The notes under the pieces are model-generated. The model made no database searches. It saw nothing but the letters and a program-made list of their open reading frames with translations, and had not been told where the DNA came from. DNA of 64,000 nt from the sequence record MK268344.1. One strand, written 5' to 3'. Made by a program: the position numbers and the translations under genes. Positions 3,083 through 41,522 of the stretch are shown piece after piece (position 1 is the stretch's first letter; every line of letters begins with the position of its first letter).

Positions 3083-3706
3083 ATGAGCATGATTAGAGAA
3101 TGGTCTTCATTCAATGATTCTAAAATTGTACTAGAACACCGTGATAACCAATTTGGCGGCAAGGATTGTTACCTACGTGGTATTTCAATCCAAGCCGACC
3201 AACGAAATAAAAACGAACGTATCTATCCTTATGCTGAAATAGCTAAGGCAGTTGAAAATATGGCACAACGTTTACGGAGCGGTGAAAGCATTCTTTGTGA
3301 ATGTGATCACCCCGAAACCCTTACTATTAACCTAGACCGTGTAGCAGCAATGATTACTAAAGTCTGGATGGAAGGTAACAACGGTATGGCTGAAATTAAA
3401 CTTCTTCCTACAGCACAAGGTGAAAATATTCGCAAGATGTTAGAATGCGGTGTTAAATTAGGCGTTAGTTCTCGTGGTTCAGGAAACGTTGATCATAATG
3501 GTATTGTTTCAGATTTTGAAATCGTAACTATTGACATTGTAGCACAACCGAGTGCTCCAGAAGCGTATCCAACTGCGGTGTTTGAATCTCTAATGAGTAA
3601 GTATGGTTCACCTGTTAATGGAAGCAAAAAAGCAATAGTGGAATCTAAATCAGAAAATTGTTTAGAAAACGAAATTCACGCTTTTTTTAAGAAATTAAAA
3701 GGGTAA
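3083..3706 (+). CDS. gp21: Prohead protease (T4 gp21-like)
   Basis: NKNERIYP, ECDHPE, KLGVSSRGSG, DIVAQPSAPEA motifs. Confidence 0.95.
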   Translation: MSMIREWSSFNDSKIVLEHRDNQFGGKDCYLRGISIQADQRNKNERIYPYAEIAKAVENMAQRLRSGESILCECDHPETLTINLDRVAAMITKVWMEGNNGMAEIKLLPTAQGENIRKMLECGVKLGVSSRGSGNVDHNGIVSDFEIVTIDIVAQPSAPEAYPTAVFESLMSKYGSPVNGSKKAIVESKSENCLENEIHAFFKKLKG

Positions 3707-3717
3707 CAAAATAAATT

Positions 3718-3725
3718 TATAAATA
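3718..3725 (+). promoter_or_regulatory. T4-type late promoter (scaffold)
   Basis: TATAAATA. Confidence 0.8.
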
Positions 3726-3772
3726 TTTGTACATCAAAAGTACGAATGTTAAGTACTTTACAGGAGATTATA

Positions 3773-4891
3773 ATGTCTAAATTAGATAAGTTTCTAAAAG
3801 AATCATCTCTTTCTGATGAAGCGAAACAGCTAATTCAGGAAGCATGGAATGAAGAAAAACAAGCAGTCGCCGCAGAAATGCGTGAAGAAATGAAAGGACG
3901 TTATCAAGAAGATCTAGCTCGTCTAACCGAAGGTCTAGATAAAATGGTAACTGGTCTAATCGCTGAAGAAATGGGTGCAGTTTACGACGAAAAAGCAAAA
4001 CTCGTTGAAGACCGTGTAACACTACGTAAAACCCTAGCAAACTTCGGTAGCTTCGCAAACGGTGTACTCGCTGAAGAAGTTAAACAAATGCGTAACGAGA
4101 CTAAACTCGTTAAAGAAAGTCTAGATAAATTCGCAGGATTCAGTAATCGTATCCTAGCAGAAGAACTAAAAGACTTCCACCATGAGAAACGTCAGTTGGT
4201 TGAAACTCGTGTTAAACTAATTGCTGAAGGTTCACAAAAAATTAATGAAGCTCGTCAGAGTGTAATTAAACGTATTACTGAAACTTCCGCTCAATATATT
4301 GCTGAGACTACTCACAATAACCTAAAAGAGCTAAAAACAGAACTACGTGAAGCACGTCAGAATATGTTTGGTCGTAAAATTTTCGAAGCATTTGCTAACG
4401 AATTCTATAGCAACCAATACAAAGAAAATTCAATTCTACGTTCTCTAAACGAATCTATTAAACAGAAAGAAAAAGAAGTTATCGAATTTAAAGAAAAACT
4501 TCAAGAATCTCAAGCTCAAGCAGAAGCTGCTCAAAAGAAAATGCGTATCATGGAAGATACTCATGCTCGTTCAGCTATCATCTCAGAGCTAGTGAAACCT
4601 CTTACTGTTCAACAGAAACAAATTATGGAATCACTACTTCAAGCTACTCCTACCGAGAAACTTAAAGACGATTTCATGAAGTACCATAAGTCTGTACTAA
4701 AAGGTACTATCAATGAATCTGCTGCTAAAACCAGCCGCCCAGCAGTTAATACAAAGGCTAAAAGTACTCTCACTGAAGGTATCGTCGTAACTGGCAACCG
4801 TGAAGGTATCATTAAAGAAAGTGAACTTGATTCCGACGATCTAGATTTCCTAAAATCTCTAGAACGTAATGCAGGAATCCACAAAAAATAA
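3773..4891 (+). CDS. gp22: Prohead scaffold protein (T4 gp22-like)
   Basis: Coiled-coil, E/K-rich protein between protease and capsid genes; ATG 3773 after AGGAG. Confidence 0.85.
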   Translation: MSKLDKFLKESSLSDEAKQLIQEAWNEEKQAVAAEMREEMKGRYQEDLARLTEGLDKMVTGLIAEEMGAVYDEKAKLVEDRVTLRKTLANFGSFANGVLAEEVKQMRNETKLVKESLDKFAGFSNRILAEELKDFHHEKRQLVETRVKLIAEGSQKINEARQSVIKRITETSAQYIAETTHNNLKELKTELREARQNMFGRKIFEAFANEFYSNQYKENSILRSLNESIKQKEKEVIEFKEKLQESQAQAEAAQKKMRIMEDTHARSAIISELVKPLTVQQKQIMESLLQATPTEKLKDDFMKYHKSVLKGTINESAAKTSRPAVNTKAKSTLTEGIVVTGNREGIIKESELDSDDLDFLKSLERNAGIHKK

Positions 4892-4972: not shown

Positions 4973-6148
4973 ATGTCACAACTATTAACTGAATCCAAAT
5001 GGGCAGCAGTAAAAGAAAAACTAACTGAAGGTCTAAAAGATAACCGTAAAACCGTTATGGAAGCTGTTCTAGAAAACCACCGTAAAGTAATGCTACGTGA
5101 AAGTGCTTCTCAAGGTGCAACTTCTGCTGGTAACATCGCAACACTAAACAAAGTAATTCTACCAATTATGCGTCGTGTTATGCCTACCGTTATCGCTAAC
5201 GAAATTATCGGTGTTCAACCTATGACTGGCCCTGTTGGTCAAATCCACACCCTACGTGTTCAATATGCTGACAACGCACCGGGCGTTATCGCTGGTGAAG
5301 AAGCACTATCCCCATACAAAATCGCTAAGTCCTATACTGGTGATGTTAATGGCGATAACGAAAATCCACGTGCTGCTCCTACTAGCCAACTAGAAGGTAC
5401 TATGGGTCGTCGCGTCAACATCCGTATCCTACGTGAAACCGTTGAAGCGAAATCTCGTCGTCTATCTGCTCGCTGGACTGTTGAATCTGCACAAGATGCT
5501 CAATCTCAACACGGTATCGACGTAGAAGCTGAACTAATGGCTGCTATCGCTCAAGAAGTTACCACTGAAATCGACCAAGAGCTACTACACAAACTACGTG
5601 CTCTACCGGGTGCCGCTGCTGTAACTTATGACCAATCTAAAGTTACTGGTGTTGCTACCTTTGTTGGTGACGAACACGCTGCTCTAGCTACTCTAATTAA
5701 CCGTCAAGCAAACGAAGTTGCTCGTCGTACTAAGCGTGGTGCTGCGAATTGGGCTGTTGTTTCTCCAACTGCACTAACTATTCTACAATCTGCTACCACT
5801 TCTAGCTTCGCTCGTACCACTGAAGGTACATTCGATGCTCCAACTAACGTTAAGTTTGTTGGTGTACTTAACAGTACTATGAAGATCTACGTTGATACCT
5901 ATGCTGATGATAGTACCGATGTATTGATTGGTTATAAAGGTAATGCAGAAACTGATGCTGGTGTATTCTATTGCCCGTACATCCCACTAATGGCATCTGG
6001 TACTGTAATGGATCCAAATACCGGGGAACTCGTAACGACATTTCTTACAAGATATGGCTACGTTCAGCTTACTGACAGTACTTCATCTCTCGGTAACGCT
6101 GCTGACTACTTCAGCAAAATTGCAATCCGCAACGTAACCTTCATGTAA
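4973..6148 (+). CDS. gp23: Major capsid protein (T4 gp23-like)
   Basis: IIGVQPMTGPVGQIHTLR, VEAKSRRLSARWT, AQEVTTEIDQE, FYCPYIPL, TRYG motifs; strong codon bias; late box at 4920. Confidence 0.97.
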   Translation: MSQLLTESKWAAVKEKLTEGLKDNRKTVMEAVLENHRKVMLRESASQGATSAGNIATLNKVILPIMRRVMPTVIANEIIGVQPMTGPVGQIHTLRVQYADNAPGVIAGEEALSPYKIAKSYTGDVNGDNENPRAAPTSQLEGTMGRRVNIRILRETVEAKSRRLSARWTVESAQDAQSQHGIDVEAELMAAIAQEVTTEIDQELLHKLRALPGAAAVTYDQSKVTGVATFVGDEHAALATLINRQANEVARRTKRGAANWAVVSPTALTILQSATTSSFARTTEGTFDAPTNVKFVGVLNSTMKIYVDTYADDSTDVLIGYKGNAETDAGVFYCPYIPLMASGTVMDPNTGELVTTFLTRYGYVQLTDSTSSLGNAADYFSKIAIRNVTFM

Positions 6149-13500: not shown

Positions 13501-13601
13501 TGACTAAGAAACTAGGTAATATTTTCGGTATTCTAAACATGGATATCGCAATCAACGAGAAGAGTACACTAGTAATGGATAGTGGATTCTTCGAATGGTA
13601 A
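10581..13601 (+). CDS. gp43: Family B DNA polymerase (gp43-like)
   Basis: Exonuclease motifs DIET, WNSEFFDIPY; polymerase motifs DFNSLYP, KILLNSLYG, YGDTDS, KKRYA. Confidence 0.97.
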   Translation: MYIDGFMERKRTGDILHVAERINGRRVLRQLDPVYEYYVESPTGTFKTIHGTMAEKLTFANQRDMRSSLELHQGRRTYESDCNVTFKTLAQEYMGKGSPDLNMVFFDIETDFHKKLGYAPPSNPFNRVTAISLYQNWTGKDYVLTLPPDDMELVEAQDIVNRLNEETNDPNSVVLLYTEETEMFNDFFDLIDDADVLSGWNSEFFDIPYMVNRTAKIFNAATTARWCLWNKKPVSREADMFGKTIVTYDLIGRVHLDYLALYKKHAGQVEQSYKLDFIAEKVTKENKVAYEGSLDKLYREDYITFLRYSKQDSILLKKIDEKLDYINLHNRLAHKECVLISTTMGSVALIDTAIINLAHSRGEVVFDKKPQEDDVTEQDDRYDYLIEDEDDGSDNEPVSAKAAGAWVQDPVLGLVDYLGCTDFNSLYPTVLRTLGMSTECILGQIRQDYTDAHLAKRVEEQRMRSKSKKFEPNWTEAWHGLFASVEFTMVRERSEQTLIVDLEDGTSFNVTGAELHDIIYAEDSTIVLSANGTLFDKTKSGVIPEILTQWYSERKSQQKMVIDFKHIYTDGWEMPEDAIDKIEAAMARYKRSETMYRTNLHEDDPVYLIRQALVQSDYEQVGKLITENGLLLEDGRIKCTKEEKNYCKTQSAFWKQNQQIRKILLNSLYGALLNKGSRFFDKRLGQSVTLTGRSMTKHMASRINEICTGEYNHQGGVVIYGDTDSVYFSVAHYMKEQGLPFDLTKEEVVDLYVKIGDEVGASFPSFMDEYFNTGIEKGKIVGADLEMVGSRGLFLKKKRYAILKYWEDGFRKDEDGSPGEIKAMGLEIKRSDTPKYIQDFLQETLIALLVGEGEEELRNRVRAFKTIFRDKPIQQKGQPRTVKNYSNLEEEYKKTGKLSVSHVLAAIQWNKLRDIYEDQSVPEATDGTKVIVCKLKPNPMGIKAVGYPIDCAEYLPEWFLELPFDEDEMEKAVLTKKLGNIFGILNMDIAINEKSTLVMDSGFFEW

Positions 13602-13612
13602 TAGGAACAATA

Positions 13613-14185
13613 ATGTCAGGAATTTTTCAACGCATTGGGGAGGCAATTGCCTCCCAAGGTAAAATCACACTAGTTGCAGCACTAAATGATGAAGAAGCAA
13701 ACATTCTCATGGGTGCTGGGTTCAAAAAAGCTGGTACAATGGATCTAAATGGTTCTTTAGTTGACCTTTACGAAGTAAAAGTACAACAAATAATCAACAC
13801 TACTCAACCATATCAAATTGCACGTGATATTTTTGATAAGCCTCGGAAATATGAACAACAATGGCCTGAAAACTATCGCATGTACTCTATCGGCACTGGT
13901 ACTGGTCAAGCTGCTCATTTAAATTTCAAAGGAAACACCACTTCTTTGATGGATGCTGCATATGATCCACTAAGTATTTTAGAAGATTATTTCTTCCCAA
14001 GAAAAGAGGAAGAAACTCATAGAGAATTCAAAATTGAAGTTGATGATATGGATGAAGAATCCAAAAATGATTTCATTCCAAAAGTTAAAGATGAATTCCA
14101 TAAATCAGGTCGCACATATTGCGATGATAGCTGGACTTCTTATAATGTAAATTACAGTGGCAACACTGACCACCGTAACTGGTAA
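13613..14185 (+). CDS. Hypothetical protein carrying two permuted portal-clip segments
   Basis: ATG 13613 after AGGA; aa 110-129 are 19/20 identical to portal 333-352; aa 137-163 align without gaps to portal 295-321. Confidence 0.8.
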   Translation: MSGIFQRIGEAIASQGKITLVAALNDEEANILMGAGFKKAGTMDLNGSLVDLYEVKVQQIINTTQPYQIARDIFDKPRKYEQQWPENYRMYSIGTGTGQAAHLNFKGNTTSLMDAAYDPLSILEDYFFPRKEEETHREFKIEVDDMDEESKNDFIPKVKDEFHKSGRTYCDDSWTSYNVNYSGNTDHRNW

Positions 14186-34240: not shown

Positions 34241-35785
34241 ATGGCTTTAGTAAACACGGACGTTAAACAATATGGAATTAACTATCAAGAGTATCTACTT
34301 TCACAGGTTCTAAGCAATCCAGACATTTTTGTACGTTGTAAGGGTATTCTTAAACCTGATTATTTTGATAAGGAATTTCATAGCAGTATTACTTTTGTGC
34401 ATGAGCACTCACAAAAATATAATACCACTCCTACCTTAGATGATATTGAGTTTAAAGGTGGTTATCGTTATCGACATACACCTGTAGATGCATTAGGTGA
34501 GCAAGCAGTACTGGATGATATTGGTCAGTTCTGTCGTCACAAAGCACTAGCTCTAGCAATTCAACAAGGTATGGAATTAGTAAATCAGAAGAAGTATGGT
34601 GGAATTGAAGAACTTATTCGTGAAGCAATGCTAGTAAGTGTTCAAAACGAATTAGGTCTAGACATTTATGAAAACCCAGAAGAAGTAATCCGTTCATTGA
34701 ATATGAATCAAGGTTCATTCAAGACTGGTTGGGAAACATTAGATTTTAAACTATACGGTGGATTCGGTCGTCAAGAACTAGAAATCTTCGCAGCGGCATC
34801 AGGTGGTGGTAAATCTGTAGTACTACAAAACTTAGCAGTTAACTTCTCCAAACAAGGTAAAGTTGGTGCTTATATATCACTAGAGCTAGCAGAAGAACTT
34901 GTTGCAGTTCGTATCTATTCAATGATGGTGAACAAAGATAACAAGTCTATTAAATCTTCACCCGAAAATGCAAGTATTCAGATTAAACTAGAAGAGAAGA
35001 CAAATGGTTCTTTACGTATTCATCGTATGCCAGAATCGGTTACTACCGTAAATGATATTGAAAGTTATCTTCGTGAACTACAAATTAAAACTGGTCTAAA
35101 GTTAGATTATGTTTGCGTGGACTATCTTGATCTATTAACATCAGACCGTTGTGGCCCAAATGATAAATCTAATGCGTTCGTTAAAGATAAGTTTGTATCA
35201 GAAGAACTACGTGCACTTGCTATGAAAATGGATATCACAGTCGTTACTGCTTGTCAGTTTAACCGTAGTGGTATTAGTGAAGAGAAGAAAAGCCAATCAC
35301 AAATCGCTGGTGGTATTTCTAAAATCTACACAGCAGATAACGTAATCTATATTGAGGCTCGTCGCGAAACTGGTGAAATGTGGTTCGACTTCCAGAAAAC
35401 TCGTAACAGTGGTGCAGTAGGTTCTCGTCTACGTATGTCATATAATACTGACAGTCTACGTGTACTTGACCATAGCATTACAGTACAGCAAATGGAAATC
35501 GATGGTTCTGGTTTCAAACACTCAGATGGTTCTAACCCAGCGAAAGTAGGTGGTGGAAACGTCACTGGAGCACCCGGAGTGCCACTACAGCAATCTCCAA
35601 TGCAGATGCTACATAGTCACTTCCAAAGCTGCCAAGCAGCTTCTACGGCGGTTCCAGATGCCCCTGTACCCCAATCTCCCGGTATTCAAGATACTTCTAA
35701 ATCATCTAGTATAAATACTACAAATGACGCTAGCATTAACAATGAAAACATGTTAGCCATCAGGAGTTTATTGAATAGGAAATAA
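34241..35785 (+). CDS. gp41: Replicative DnaB-like helicase (gp41-like)
   Basis: AASGGGKS, SLEL, VDYLDL, TACQFNR, KTRNS. Confidence 0.95.
   Translation: MALVNTDVKQYGINYQEYLLSQVLSNPDIFVRCKGILKPDYFDKEFHSSITFVHEHSQKYNTTPTLDDIEFKGGYRYRHTPVDALGEQAVLDDIGQFCRHKALALAIQQGMELVNQKKYGGIEELIREAMLVSVQNELGLDIYENPEEVIRSLNMNQGSFKTGWETLDFKLYGGFGRQELEIFAAASGGGKSVVLQNLAVNFSKQGKVGAYISLELAEELVAVRIYSMMVNKDNKSIKSSPENASIQIKLEEKTNGSLRIHRMPESVTTVNDIESYLRELQIKTGLKLDYVCVDYLDLLTSDRCGPNDKSNAFVKDKFVSEELRALAMKMDITVVTACQFNRSGISEEKKSQSQIAGGISKIYTADNVIYIEARRETGEMWFDFQKTRNSGAVGSRLRMSYNTDSLRVLDHSITVQQMEIDGSGFKHSDGSNPAKVGGGNVTGAPGVPLQQSPMQMLHSHFQSCQAASTAVPDAPVPQSPGIQDTSKSSSINTTNDASINNENMLAIRSLLNRK
35710..35717 (+). promoter_or_regulatory. 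Late promoter inside the helicase coding sequence
   Basis: TATAAATA about 70 nt before the 35789 start. Confidence 0.7.
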
Positions 35786-35788
35786 TAC

Positions 35789-36070
35789 ATGTCGAGTGAT
35801 AAGAAAACACTTCTTGATAGTATCTTTAACTATACGCCAGAAAAAAGTAAATTACAGAATTTTAGTACTAAAGCAGATCATGCGATTAATTCTGTAATTA
35901 ATTTGCTTGAGTATATTGATACTGAATTTGGACAAGACGATGCAGACGATCTTAAAAAGCGATTGTTTCTAAGTATTAAAAACAGGGATTATAAAAAATT
36001 CCAACGTGGATTAGATAACATAGCTCTTGATGAAAAACGACAATCCAAGGGAGGACGATTAGATGAGTAA
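35789..36070 (+). CDS. Hypothetical late protein
   Basis: 93 aa; first gene after TATAAATA at 35710. Confidence 0.65.
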   Translation: MSSDKKTLLDSIFNYTPEKSKLQNFSTKADHAINSVINLLEYIDTEFGQDDADDLKKRLFLSIKNRDYKKFQRGLDNIALDEKRQSKGGRLDE

Positions 36071-36227
36071 GAAACTCAAAGAAAATGCTTCTTCTGGTGC
36101 GACGAGTGCAGGGAGTATTGCATCTGTTAGTACTGGATTACATTTTCCACTAATGAAACGTTTACCGAAGACAATACTCTTTGGTGGCTATACTGAAGTG
36201 AATATGGAGAAAAAAGATAAGAAATGA
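36063..36227 (+). CDS. 54-aa protein resembling the capsid-protein cleavage site and N-terminus (absent from ORF track)
   Basis: MSKKLKENASSGATSAGSIASV...KDKK; GGAGG upstream; overlaps both neighbours; 12/16 identity to MCP LRESASQGATSAGNIA. Confidence 0.75.
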   Translation: MSKKLKENASSGATSAGSIASVSTGLHFPLMKRLPKTILFGGYTEVNMEKKDKK

Positions 36228-36625
36228 AACCATACACATTCTACACGATAAACACGATTGTAGATATTGGTGATGGTAGTACTCCCGCAATTATTGATGG
36301 AAAGTTTACTGGTGCAATGAATCTAACACGGATTGTACAATCTGTGATGGAATATGACTATCCAATGATGGTCAGCATAGTAAGGAATGAAGTTGATTTG
36401 TCAAAGGGTAACAATTCTGATTTCTACGCATTACCTGCATCATGGGGTAAATGTATTGTTAGTACTTTAAAATTTGCATTACCTGTTGATGTGCATATAC
36501 AATTGACTGGAATACCATTAGTACTCCCCACTGTAGTTAATAAAACGAGAATCACAAGATTTAATCTAGCATCAAGTACTCGTAATACAAGCATAACTAA
36601 ACAAACTTTTTCTATGAGTAAATAA
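36224..36625 (+). CDS. Putative virion protein
   Basis: 133 aa in the late cluster; weak resemblance (NLTRIVQSV) to the 16938/17605 pair. Confidence 0.55.
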   Translation: MKPYTFYTINTIVDIGDGSTPAIIDGKFTGAMNLTRIVQSVMEYDYPMMVSIVRNEVDLSKGNNSDFYALPASWGKCIVSTLKFALPVDVHIQLTGIPLVLPTVVNKTRITRFNLASSTRNTSITKQTFSMSK

Positions 36626-36652
36626 CGGAAAGGTTTTCTTTTTGGAGATACA

Positions 36653-37588
36653 ATGGATATTCAACAAACCGCAACGGAATTGCAAAAGTTCGCAGATGCG
36701 AATGGTTTGCAGATGGATGTATCTACAGTTTTAGATAGTATGGATGCAGGGGATTTTGTTGCCCTAAACCAAGCTATGGATAATTCTGATAATCATTCCA
36801 TTCTTAAAATTTTACAAAAATATAAATCTCGTACATTTGAGAGTTATCAATATTTTAGTGGTATGTTACTAACTGAAGATGAAAGTATAAATTTAGTTAA
36901 TGACATGACACCAGATGAATTGATTGAACATTACCGTACTATGGAAGGTATGATTCATGAAGTTGATCACTTAACTTTACAAGAAATTCGCACTTTAGTT
37001 TATGAAGATTTAACTACACAGTTACGTGCTAATCAGATTGTTGGTCGTAATACTACTACACAGCAACAGCAAGTAAATCCTCAAACACAAGCTAAAGTTA
37101 AACAAGCTAATATTCAGCGTAATGCGAATAATAGTTCGTTTAAAGTTTCAGTACCGGGTAACCAACAAGGTACGCAGGAAATTGAGCCAGTGGTCGGTAT
37201 TGATCCGGGGCCAACTCCACAGCAAACATTGGTTGTAACCAAAGATCAAAATAAACCTAATGAACTAAGTGTTTATGGTTTAGATGATGTTGAAACTGTA
37301 CAAAATCAAGGTACTACCACAATCAGTGAAGAATTATCACCCCAAGAAGCCAATGATGAAGTAATGGGGCCACCATCTGGTAGAGATAATATTGGTGGAG
37401 GCCCAACAACCTTTACTAATACTGCTGCTGGTATGGGAGCAATTCGACAAGCGATTGACGATGCTGTATCATCTGAAGTTGAAAATACTGATGGTGAACA
37501 AAGTCCATTGGGTAATGATGCTACCGAAGCTGGTAATGATATGATTGACCAGATTATTGACTTCTGCACGAGAATGAGAGGTAGATAA
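36653..37588 (+). CDS. Putative head-associated protein with Q/T-rich disordered region
   Basis: Late box AGTAAATA at 36617; several L/I-x-E motifs. Confidence 0.6.
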   Translation: MDIQQTATELQKFADANGLQMDVSTVLDSMDAGDFVALNQAMDNSDNHSILKILQKYKSRTFESYQYFSGMLLTEDESINLVNDMTPDELIEHYRTMEGMIHEVDHLTLQEIRTLVYEDLTTQLRANQIVGRNTTTQQQQVNPQTQAKVKQANIQRNANNSSFKVSVPGNQQGTQEIEPVVGIDPGPTPQQTLVVTKDQNKPNELSVYGLDDVETVQNQGTTTISEELSPQEANDEVMGPPSGRDNIGGGPTTFTNTAAGMGAIRQAIDDAVSSEVENTDGEQSPLGNDATEAGNDMIDQIIDFCTRMRGR

Positions 37589-37809
37589 TGAGAATAGCCA
37601 AAAGTGAATTTGGCGTTTCGGTAATGGTATCTAATGAAGAATATCGTGTTATTCGTAAAATAAAATCATTGGGCCGTGTCAATCGTGACATGGTTCCTGA
37701 TTACTATCAGGAAATTGCTGATAAATTAGTATCTCGTGGAGTTCTAAATAGAATAGAAATTGGCGAGAAAGAATACTATGAACCAGTGAGGATAAAGAAA
37801 AATGATTGA
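37588..37809 (+). CDS. Hypothetical protein
   Basis: 73 aa, translationally coupled. Confidence 0.6.
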   Translation: MRIAKSEFGVSVMVSNEEYRVIRKIKSLGRVNRDMVPDYYQEIADKLVSRGVLNRIEIGEKEYYEPVRIKKND

Positions 37810-38542
37810 TAGAAACGAAGTTAACAACATTATGGATATGCTTGGTTCTCTAGATGAAATCGAAGCAGGAACTAATGCACCCGTAGCGTCACAAGAATCT
37901 TTTAATGCAACTCGTGATCTTCTAAGTGGACTAAATGATATTGGTCTAGCGTATGGTAACTTATTAACACCAGAAAATGCAGTACCAGATCAAATAAGTG
38001 AATCTCAATTATATGAGAACTATGACGATTTCGAAGCACAAGAAAGATTAAACCAAATTTATGGACAAGACCCTAATGGCGTTATTAATTACGATCAGGG
38101 TAAACCACAAACTAAATCAGTACAACAAACTTTTAAACCAAGTATTGGTTCACCTAAAACTGCATGGTCATTGGTGGAAGAAGTTGCTCCCGGAACAAAG
38201 AGTACTAAAGTCTATAGTATTCAATCCAACCATAGTGGACAAAAGATTATGGATGGTATCATGATGTACGAAGCAGCCTTGACTCTAACTAATCTTCTAA
38301 ATGAAGGTCGTAAGATTAATGATACTAAGATGCTAGGCATTATTAGTTCAGGATTGCAGTACACTAATGTTGTAAACGAAGGCATTAAAGCCGCTCGCGA
38401 ACGTCAGAAAGTACTTAAAGAATCTCGTTATGATGATGCGAAAGACCTTGATATTATTATTGCAGAAAAGAAAGCGGAAGCGTACAAGTTAAAAGAACGA
38501 GTACTTACCTTTTTGCAAAAAGAAGGTTACATTAGTAAATAA
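37802..38542 (+). CDS. Putative head-associated protein
   Basis: 246 aa in the late cluster; LYE/LKE motifs. Confidence 0.55.
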   Translation: MIDRNEVNNIMDMLGSLDEIEAGTNAPVASQESFNATRDLLSGLNDIGLAYGNLLTPENAVPDQISESQLYENYDDFEAQERLNQIYGQDPNGVINYDQGKPQTKSVQQTFKPSIGSPKTAWSLVEEVAPGTKSTKVYSIQSNHSGQKIMDGIMMYEAALTLTNLLNEGRKINDTKMLGIISSGLQYTNVVNEGIKAARERQKVLKESRYDDAKDLDIIIAEKKAEAYKLKERVLTFLQKEGYISK

Positions 38543-41473: not shown

Positions 41474-41522
41474 ATTTCCCCTTATAAATATAAAACTGAA
41501 ATAATTAACACAAGGAAGTCAA

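Follow-up and report, generated by a model that had tools for sequence, protein, structure and literature searches.

The small gene at positions 36063 to 36227 of a 64,000-nucleotide stretch of phage DNA (hereafter, the window) encodes a 54-amino-acid (aa) protein that, as judged by sequence comparison, copies the mobile N-terminal arm of the phage's major capsid protein and none of its ordered body. Every Rak2-like phage checked has this gene in conserved, syntenic form, its product is made and occurs in a particle fraction, and the same module is found in other phages at the C-termini of much larger proteins. We tentatively propose, with a confidence that stops somewhat short of even, that the product is a protease-trimmed, DNA-facing small head protein that would enter the prohead by contacts of the type made by the capsid arm.

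The window belongs to Salmonella phage Munch (MK268344.1), window position 35000 being record position 221000. Between positions 35000 and 38000, it is 100% identical to Munch and 99.4 to 100% identical to phages PHA46, 7t3, and SE_PL and to Klebsiella phage fENko-Kae01; Munch and these near-identical phages are Rak2-like jumbo myophages of about 350 kb. A T4-type head module is present in the window. It comprises a portal gene (12 to 1784; Pfam Portal_T4, E = 2e-115), a prohead protease gene (Peptidase_S77; 3083 to 3706, plus strand; Pfam E = 6.6e-21), a scaffold gene (3746 to 4891, plus strand), and the gene for a major capsid protein of the T4 gp23 family (4973 to 6148, plus strand; Pfam Gp23, E = 8e-91), which aligns with T4 gp23* (PDB 8gmo/5vf3). 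T4-type prohead proteases are specific for L/I-x-E (PMC9026906), and the S77 enzyme is the expected cutter at such sites in Munch. The 381-aa scaffold protein contains 24 [L/I]-x-E sites, as would be expected if the specificity of this protease were of the T4 type. The protease gene (3083 to 3706) and the gene for the 54-aa protein, its putative substrate, are thus found in the same genome.

Elsewhere in the window, a 196-aa open reading frame (ORF; 13595 to 14185) lies directly after the DNA polymerase gene and contains a 28-residue stretch resembling the T4-type portal protein (79% identical to portal residues 339 to 366; E = 4e-10). A reading of the DNA made from its letters alone (the sequence-only reading) had noted a likeness to a head protein in "ORF 13613," and at the level of sequence that likeness is real. 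A homolog of the 196-aa ORF is also present in locus L147.

The 54-aa gene (CPT_Munch_319; AZU98263.1; plus strand) encodes a protein of 5.8 kDa with a pI of 10. A Shine-Dalgarno sequence, GGAGG (36050 to 36054, plus strand), stands 8 nucleotides (nt) before the ATG and is also annotated as a ribosome-binding site (RBS) in MK268344.1. The gene overlaps by 8 nt the upstream 93-aa gene (35789 to 36070, plus strand), whose stop codon is at 36068 to 36070, and it shares an ATGA overlap at 36224 with the downstream 133-aa gene. All that the sequence-only reading stated about this ORF, its RBS, and its two overlaps is accurate, except that the gene is not unlisted, since GenBank carries it as a hypothetical protein. 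The same annotation is found in PHA46, 7t3, 121Q, phAPEC6, Erwinia and Vibrio relatives, and fENko-Kae01. The RaK2 record alone has no gene call, and its 51-aa homologous ORF is intact and syntenic (L005:1501-1656; record positions 120706 to 120861).

The upstream 93-aa gene, a partner kept in all relatives, belongs to PHROG 11854, a "virion structural protein" family. Downstream lie tightly packed genes of 133, 311, 73, and 246 aa (36224 to 38539, plus strand); the first three fall into PHROG families labeled "virion structural protein," and the fourth matches PHROG 16179, of unknown function. The 54-aa protein itself matched no Pfam family, and its only PHROG match was PHROG 17311, also of unknown function, which it covers over nearly its full length (E = 2.1e-25; residues 3 to 53 against positions 4 to 53 of a 54-position profile). 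We also weighed a frameshift fusion with the upstream gene but discarded it, as 121Q has no overlap there.

The protein can be divided into four parts, all encoded on the plus strand. A seven-residue leader (36063 to 36083) ends in L-K-E (36075 to 36083), with a predicted prohead-protease site at E7/N8. The conserved motif that follows, N8 to V22 (36084 to 36128; A-S/T-x-G-A/S-T-S-A/S-G-x-I-A-S-V), corresponds to the start of the predicted mature capsid protein. Further on, P-L-M-K-R-L-P (36147 to 36167) matches P-I-M-R-R-V-M-P of the capsid protein, at the end of the N-arm (T4 gp23 residues ~93 to 104). The C-terminal part (36174 to 36224) consists of a hydrophobic-F-G-G segment and a lysine-rich end and is without a counterpart in the capsid protein.

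The sequence-only reading also placed the gene in an operon opened by a late promoter at 35710. The T4-late-promoter-like octamer TATAAATA does occur there (35710 to 35717, plus strand), inside the 3' end of the helicase gene, and its function as a late promoter is plausible because similar octamers lie 28 nt before the scaffold gene (3718 to 3725) and 22 nt before ORF 41505 (41483 to 41490). The latter two are the better late-promoter candidates. Enrichment and conservation both speak against the octamer at 35710: there are 8 copies in the window versus 8.1 expected, and at this position it is absent from 121Q, RaK2, and the Vibrio relative. A conserved late promoter is therefore unsupported.

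The counterpart of the 54-aa protein in the capsid protein is formed by residues 41 to 74 (5093 to 5194, plus strand), which consist of L-R-E, a predicted cut at E43/S44, and an N-arm segment like that of the small protein. Over the 16 residues in which the likeness was first noticed (nt 5093 to 5140), 12 are indeed identical, with different codons for 7 of the 12, and nucleotide identity amounts to 35 of 60 nt over 20 codons. The likeness extends to about 35 residues, the added part including P-x-M-K/R-R-x-P; BLASTP aligns ORF residues 5 to 39 with capsid residues 41 to 74 (16/35 identical, 28/35 positive; E = 1e-7). A search of the window's 1185 six-frame ORF segments gave a single match below an E value of 1, the capsid protein (8.6e-6; next best, 2.4). 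Moreover, a module-only hidden Markov model (HMM) recovers all of the clade's capsid proteins over profile positions 3 to 37 at an E value of about 1e-7. When applied to TH47, a relative with a complete genome of 352 kb (5271 six-frame ORF segments), the model matches two ORFs and no others, namely the small ORF and the capsid gene, and the motif is thus not a generic low-complexity string. This result contradicts the objection, foreseen in the sequence-only reading, that ASxGATSAG might be such a string.

Capsid proteins of the clade, both cultured and environmental (63 to 100% identical to that of Munch), all have L-x-E followed by S/N/A/T. Their consensus after the site is A-S/T-x-G-A/S-T-x-x-G-N-I/V-A-T/S, followed by an invariant L-P-V/I-I/M-R-R-V-M-P. 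Residue 48 of the Munch capsid protein aligns with residue 82 of T4 gp23*, for which the structure is solved; this places the common segment at T4 residues ~78 to 104, that is, the second half of the N-fist (66 to 91) plus the N-arm. In the unexpanded T4 prohead, the arm residues are disordered and inward pointing (the first ordered residue is L106), and the arm probably touches the scaffolding core; after expansion, it moves outward and locks capsomers together (PMC9546572, PMC7136217, PMC9958956). The 54-aa protein had no Pfam hit that would make it a member of the Gp23 family (PF07068), and its likeness to that family is limited to the arm, capsid residues 41 to 74.

The sequence-only reading had interpreted the likeness as "self-mimicry," in which the small protein copies the capsid protein of its own phage. 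This interpretation did not survive a comparison of the 18-residue site-plus-motif in eight genomes that have both genes: cognate module-capsid pairs share 10.25 identities over 18 positions and noncognate pairs 10.20 (permutation p = 0.63). Genome-specific covariation between module and capsid is rejected on the same numbers. An old consensus is kept by the module and the capsid protein alike, and the small protein does not track its own capsid.

The predicted protease site is the most constant feature of the module. In 20 of 20 aligned module sequences, [L/I/V]-x-E stands ahead of the motif with its Glu invariant, and it does so in all capsid proteins examined too, which bears out the claim that the two proteins share a predicted maturation site and N-arm. 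The 54-aa protein has this conserved site, expected of an S77 substrate, as L-K-E at residues 5 to 7. Among the matches listed from an environmental scan described below, 27 further variants leave the Glu before the motif unchanged. Taking all variants together, the third residue ahead of the cut is I, L, V, or M, with two exceptions. For the capsid protein, a cut after residue 43 gives a computed mass of 37.2 to 37.3 kDa (121Q, from 42.2 to 37.2 kDa). Hua et al. reported that the 121Q capsid protein, of 42.2 kDa, is ~37 kDa by SDS-PAGE (PMC5646251), and this mature size fits cleavage after residue 43.

The tBLASTn search in relatives that had been suggested as a check found homologs of the 54-aa ORF in 61 phage records, from phages of Escherichia, Klebsiella, Salmonella, Erwinia, and Cronobacter and from one Vibrio phage. 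In every locus fetched, the order is a DnaB-type helicase gene, a gene of ~90 aa, the small ORF, and a gene of ~130 aa; RaK2 has one additional gene inserted in this otherwise common order. Sixteen residues are invariant across 16 aligned sequences. The dN/dS ratio of the core is 0.18 to 0.29 in seven of eight computable pairs and 0.56 in the Munch-Vibrio pair, with synonymous sites near saturation, and the gene is under purifying selection.

Direct evidence for the protein comes from fENko-Kae01. Its ENKO_323 is identical to the Munch protein and carries the GenBank note "identified with LC-MS/MS analysis," which establishes that the gene is translated. The published data list this protein (CDS_323, 54 aa) with a probability of 1 and 12 spectral counts (PMC11218385, Supplementary Table S3); for comparison, the portal protein has 52 counts, the protease 19, and the capsid protein 106 (PMC11218385). 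The 311- and 73-aa neighbors passed the LC-MS/MS criteria as well, and the 246-aa one passed the lower threshold only (PMC11218385). As the preparation was ultrafiltered at 300 kDa only, these counts describe a particle fraction and do not prove virion membership, and the search, which used strict trypsin and lists no peptides, is silent on an N-terminal cut. The homolog gp188c is not listed among phAPEC6 virion proteins identified by gel-based mass spectrometry, in which proteins of 5 to 6 kDa are easily lost.

Beyond the cultured Rak2-like phages, the module is an old and widespread unit that is either free-standing or the C-terminal end of a larger protein. A profile search of 1.84 billion representative proteins matched 16 clusters, whose members are mostly 49- to 73-aa proteins of the same build as the Munch ORF. 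Four long proteins in these clusters (147, 294, 603, and 701 aa) carry the module as their last 50 to 60 residues, directly after L/V-x-E. The 603- and 701-aa proteins come from contigs that are pieces of jumbo phages (one measures 453 kb) and that are collinear, gene by gene, with the window from 28.5 to 40.3 kb, in the order primase, helicase, 81- to 93-aa gene, module, 73- to 76-aa and 215- to 246-aa genes, and further common genes. Based on this collinearity, the Munch ORF is the positional ortholog of the C-terminal module in the 603- to 701-aa proteins. The 701-aa protein has a LysM domain, and the 603-aa protein has long glycine-rich hydrophobic stretches. One lineage shows a split state, in which a 598-aa gene and a 65-aa module gene are joined by an ATGA overlap; in other lineages, the module is fused as the C-terminus of a 603- to 777-aa protein, and the two arrangements (L025:1199-3189; L018:10001-11812) point to gene fission or fusion.

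By helicase similarity, the nearest cultured relatives of the collinear contigs are Phosso, Atu_ph07, and PA5oct. Phosso, a Sinorhizobium phage of 469 kb, encodes a divergent 65-aa module (XYS97606.1; L250:5588-5785) in the syntenic place downstream of the helicase gene, with L-F-E, then H-A-S-G-G-G-T-G-A-G-S-V-A-T, and a basic end. No module was found within 8 to 9 kb downstream of the helicase gene in PA5oct and Atu_ph07. PA5oct gp281 (L127:27322-28818) is a very acidic 498-aa protein with the capsid-arm motif after V-E-E at residue 43. Its gene lies directly upstream of that for the large terminase, and the protein, which is restricted to PA5oct-like phages, is a virion protein by ESI-MS/MS.

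Scanning IMG/VR for DNA that encodes the 13-mer A-T-A-G-A-T-S-A-G-N-I-A-S/T yielded at least 120 loci, the matches listed being 86 capsid genes and 34 other ORFs. Among the matches listed, the noncapsid ORFs are of two kinds. Those of the first kind are free-standing and encode 60 to 90 aa, with a leader such as M-K-I-x-E-I-x-E followed by the motif, a Lys/Pro-rich linker, and a conserved end (N-A-L-D ... F-G-G-x-x-I-K-R). In the second kind, the module is the C-terminus of a 120- to 650-aa protein, often behind L-A-G-I/M-x-E. Most of these loci also encode a DNA polymerase matching that of Munch (E, ~1e-220), which assigns most of the module loci to Munch's broad clade, in a different gene context; the kinship of environmental capsids and modules is indirect, being based on identical 12-mers and on these DNA polymerases (E, ~1e-220). 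The predicted mature peptides have net charges from 0 to +11, and their tails are basic.

Other searches returned little. A tblastn search of cultured phages with one fused protein (P0029) and one module (P0027) found nothing, probably owing to low-complexity masking, and a search with an environmental small protein matched only RaK2-type capsid arms. The module profile gave chance matches only in the PDB (E values of 0.3 or worse), and the ESM Atlas yielded unnamed viral clusters only. A full-text literature search for the motif string found nothing relevant.

Two further elements were observed in the uncultured relatives. One, D/E-hydrophobic-x-K/R-L-A-G-I/V-x-E, recurs in many proteins, at N-termini and just before modules (L027:1333-1569, L043:843-1064, L222, L187, L202, and also PA5oct gp281) and may be another protease or targeting signal of the clade. 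The other is a conserved basic segment, E-N-F-A-D-G-K ... S-L-R-K ... H-W-x-A-N-M-K-A-G-R, in neighbors of environmental modules; it is C-terminal in L043:1061-2833 and mid-protein in L027:2231-2986. This segment may correspond to viral DUF3008 clusters, which the ESM Atlas gave as distant look-alikes.

We propose the following model for a small head protein. Residues 5 to 37 are an old paralog of the capsid maturation site and mobile N-terminal arm, and this arm-like segment would bring about coassembly into the prohead via the contacts used by the capsid arm. The S77 prohead protease would cut after L-K-E (E7), as it would cut the capsid protein after L-R-E (E43), and the 47-residue product would stay in the head with its lysine-rich tail toward the DNA. 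The modules that end large proteins in related phages, and that stand behind the same site, would serve as incorporation tags that can be cleaved off; the Munch gene would be the free-standing form without cargo.

Several lines of evidence fit this model. The module always comes directly after a head-protease-type site, and the invariance of that site points to passage through the prohead interior. The module is equivalent to a capsid segment that is inside the prohead before expansion. It is present at the ends of cargo-like proteins, it has a basic tail, and it was detected in a particle preparation. Also, the homology stops at the start of the ordered capsid body, the gene sits among virion structural genes, and T4 offers precedents in propeptides, at either terminus, that direct proteins into the core and are cut off at L/I-x-E (PMC9026906). 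Several points argue against it: the particle preparation was purified by ultrafiltration only and its strict-trypsin search gives no direct sign of cleavage, gp188c is not listed for phAPEC6 virions, the mature N-arm of T4 lies on the outer surface, which is a poor fit with an internal DNA-facing peptide, and the leader is only 5 to 10 residues long.

A broader version of this idea, which we regard as possible but doubtful, is that the major capsid protein gave rise to a portable incorporation tag, the capsid-arm module, which the protease can release and which is used clade-wide to load proteins into heads. If this were true, the candidate cargo would be the large LysM-bearing or glycine-rich proteins, which are possible ejection proteins, and the acidic 498-aa protein of PA5oct, while the free form would anchor DNA to the shell or the inner body.

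Rather than acting inside the head, the peptide could stand in for the N-arm or act as cement on the mature shell, filling arm-binding grooves that are empty after expansion because a neighboring capsomer is absent or differs, as in the surroundings of the portal or at pentons. The sequence-only reading had this idea foremost and also suggested protease timing and the decoying of defenses. The part copied is exactly the one through which the T4 arm makes intra- and intercapsomer contacts, T4 arms come to lie outside after expansion, and within a whole Rak2-like genome, the module is confined to the capsid protein and the small ORF. In addition, the N-fists beside the T4 portal are disordered and lack a partner (PMC7136217), and low-resolution maps of 121Q contain extra unassigned densities (PMC5646251). 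Nevertheless, we consider this role unlikely. The outer surface offers no obvious use for a strongly basic tail, the invariant protease site implies a route through the prohead interior, and the fused forms of 600 to 780 aa, with their LysM domains or glycine-rich hydrophobic segments, resemble packaged cargo, not cement. There is also no cognate covariation with the capsid protein.

Still less probable is a cytoplasmic decoy or regulator, in which the free arm would bind partners of the nascent capsid protein, such as EF-Tu (compare the Gol region of T4), a capsid-sensing defense protein, or the protease, and would blunt sensing or time cleavage. In T4, the most conserved part of gp23 is what EF-Tu binds and what sets off Lit (PMC3014915). 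The segment common to the two proteins borders on this part, but the likeness stops before the core of the conserved G-V-Q-P region. One source describes bacterial immunity that is triggered by capsid proteins (PMC9712102), yet the module is conserved evenly in phages of hosts ranging from Vibrio to Sinorhizobium, and nothing hints at an arms race. Moreover, the protein is present in the particle fraction, its gene is within a structural operon, and large proteins carry the module as their C-terminal end, after a head-protease site. The basic tail, the fused forms, and the detection in a particle preparation together favor a role in head assembly over a cytoplasmic decoy.

That the gene is a leftover propeptide without a role of its own, remaining after the loss of a large upstream cargo protein, is a marginally weaker proposal. 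Its positional orthology to the C-terminal module of 603- to 701-aa proteins and the existence of a split state are what such a history would leave behind, but a functionless remnant sits poorly with a dN/dS of about 0.2 and saturated synonymous sites across Rak2-like phages, universal retention (61 phage records), a strong RBS with translational coupling, and a protein that is made. Finally, a chance resemblance of two low-complexity Ala/Ser/Gly/Thr stretches is scarcely credible: the motif is rich in small residues, but the BLASTP E value of 1e-7 is composition corrected, the match is the sole one both within the window and across a whole genome, the profile search of 1.84 billion representatives yielded no more than 16 clusters, and the likeness includes P-x-M-K/R-R-x-P, which is not of low complexity.

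The small head protein that we propose has relatives in kind among known systems. The closest comparison in sequence is with the arm of T4 gp23* and of the Rak2-like capsid proteins, which share with it ~35 homologous residues, the L/I-x-E site ahead of them, and an R-R-x-x-P that closes the mobile arm. Unlike those proteins, it has no HK97-fold body, a short F-G-G segment and a lysine-rich tail standing in its place, and its gene is separate from the capsid gene, 31 kb away. T4 IPI to IPIII, with their capsid targeting sequence, and the C-terminal propeptides of Alt and gp21 are likewise small basic proteins or cleavable end-pieces; they are taken into the prohead core and cut at L/I-x-E (PMC9026906, PMC9958956). 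In contrast to the T4 internal proteins, the proposed targeting element of Munch stands after the cut, not before it, and would be derived from the capsid arm. The 54-aa protein is not a recognizable member of the T4 internal protein family, as it matched only PHROG 17311 and its leader, M-S-K-K-L-K-E, is unlike the T4 targeting sequence. Presumably, the M-K-I-x-E-I-x-E leaders of the uncultured module relatives do recall that sequence.

T4 gp67 and gp68 are acidic or scaffold-like, unlike the Munch protein, and we know of no reported likeness of either to gp23. They are similar to it, together with their internal peptides, in being small prohead components that are cut by gp21, with the pieces retained (PMC9958956). 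In phiKZ- and SPN3US-like giant phages, many head proteins are cut after Glu by the prohead protease, and some are DNA associated (PMC9026906). An inner body has been seen in 121Q and phAPEC6 (PMC5646251, PMC7247149). The phiKZ- and SPN3US-like phages differ in belonging to another lineage and in their S/A-x-E cleavage motif, and no capsid-arm module has been described for them. Adenovirus pre-mu and pVII are small, very basic, protease-matured peptides that are kept with the packaged DNA; both the virus and the sequences are unrelated, and the likeness is an analogy only.

What was already known, then, is the gene as a hypothetical protein in databases and, as kinds, protease-matured small head proteins and targeting propeptides. 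A module that is homologous to the capsid's own arm and occurs free or fused across a jumbo-phage clade seems to be undescribed. Head maturation in Rak2-like jumbo phages is almost unstudied, and several of these phages are therapy candidates. For them, the analysis sets a testable capsid cleavage site, after residue 43, and a conserved "hypothetical" protein that had been detected in a particle preparation is now identified. The module also links the capsid subunit to accessory proteins in both cultured and uncultured giant phages. If it is an incorporation tag, it would explain how extra proteins are loaded into heads and, like the T4 targeting sequence, would offer a handle for packaging chosen proteins into jumbo-phage capsids. 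In that case, capsid targeting would also have evolved a second time, independently of the T4 CTS, in a system that works by imitating the capsid subunit.
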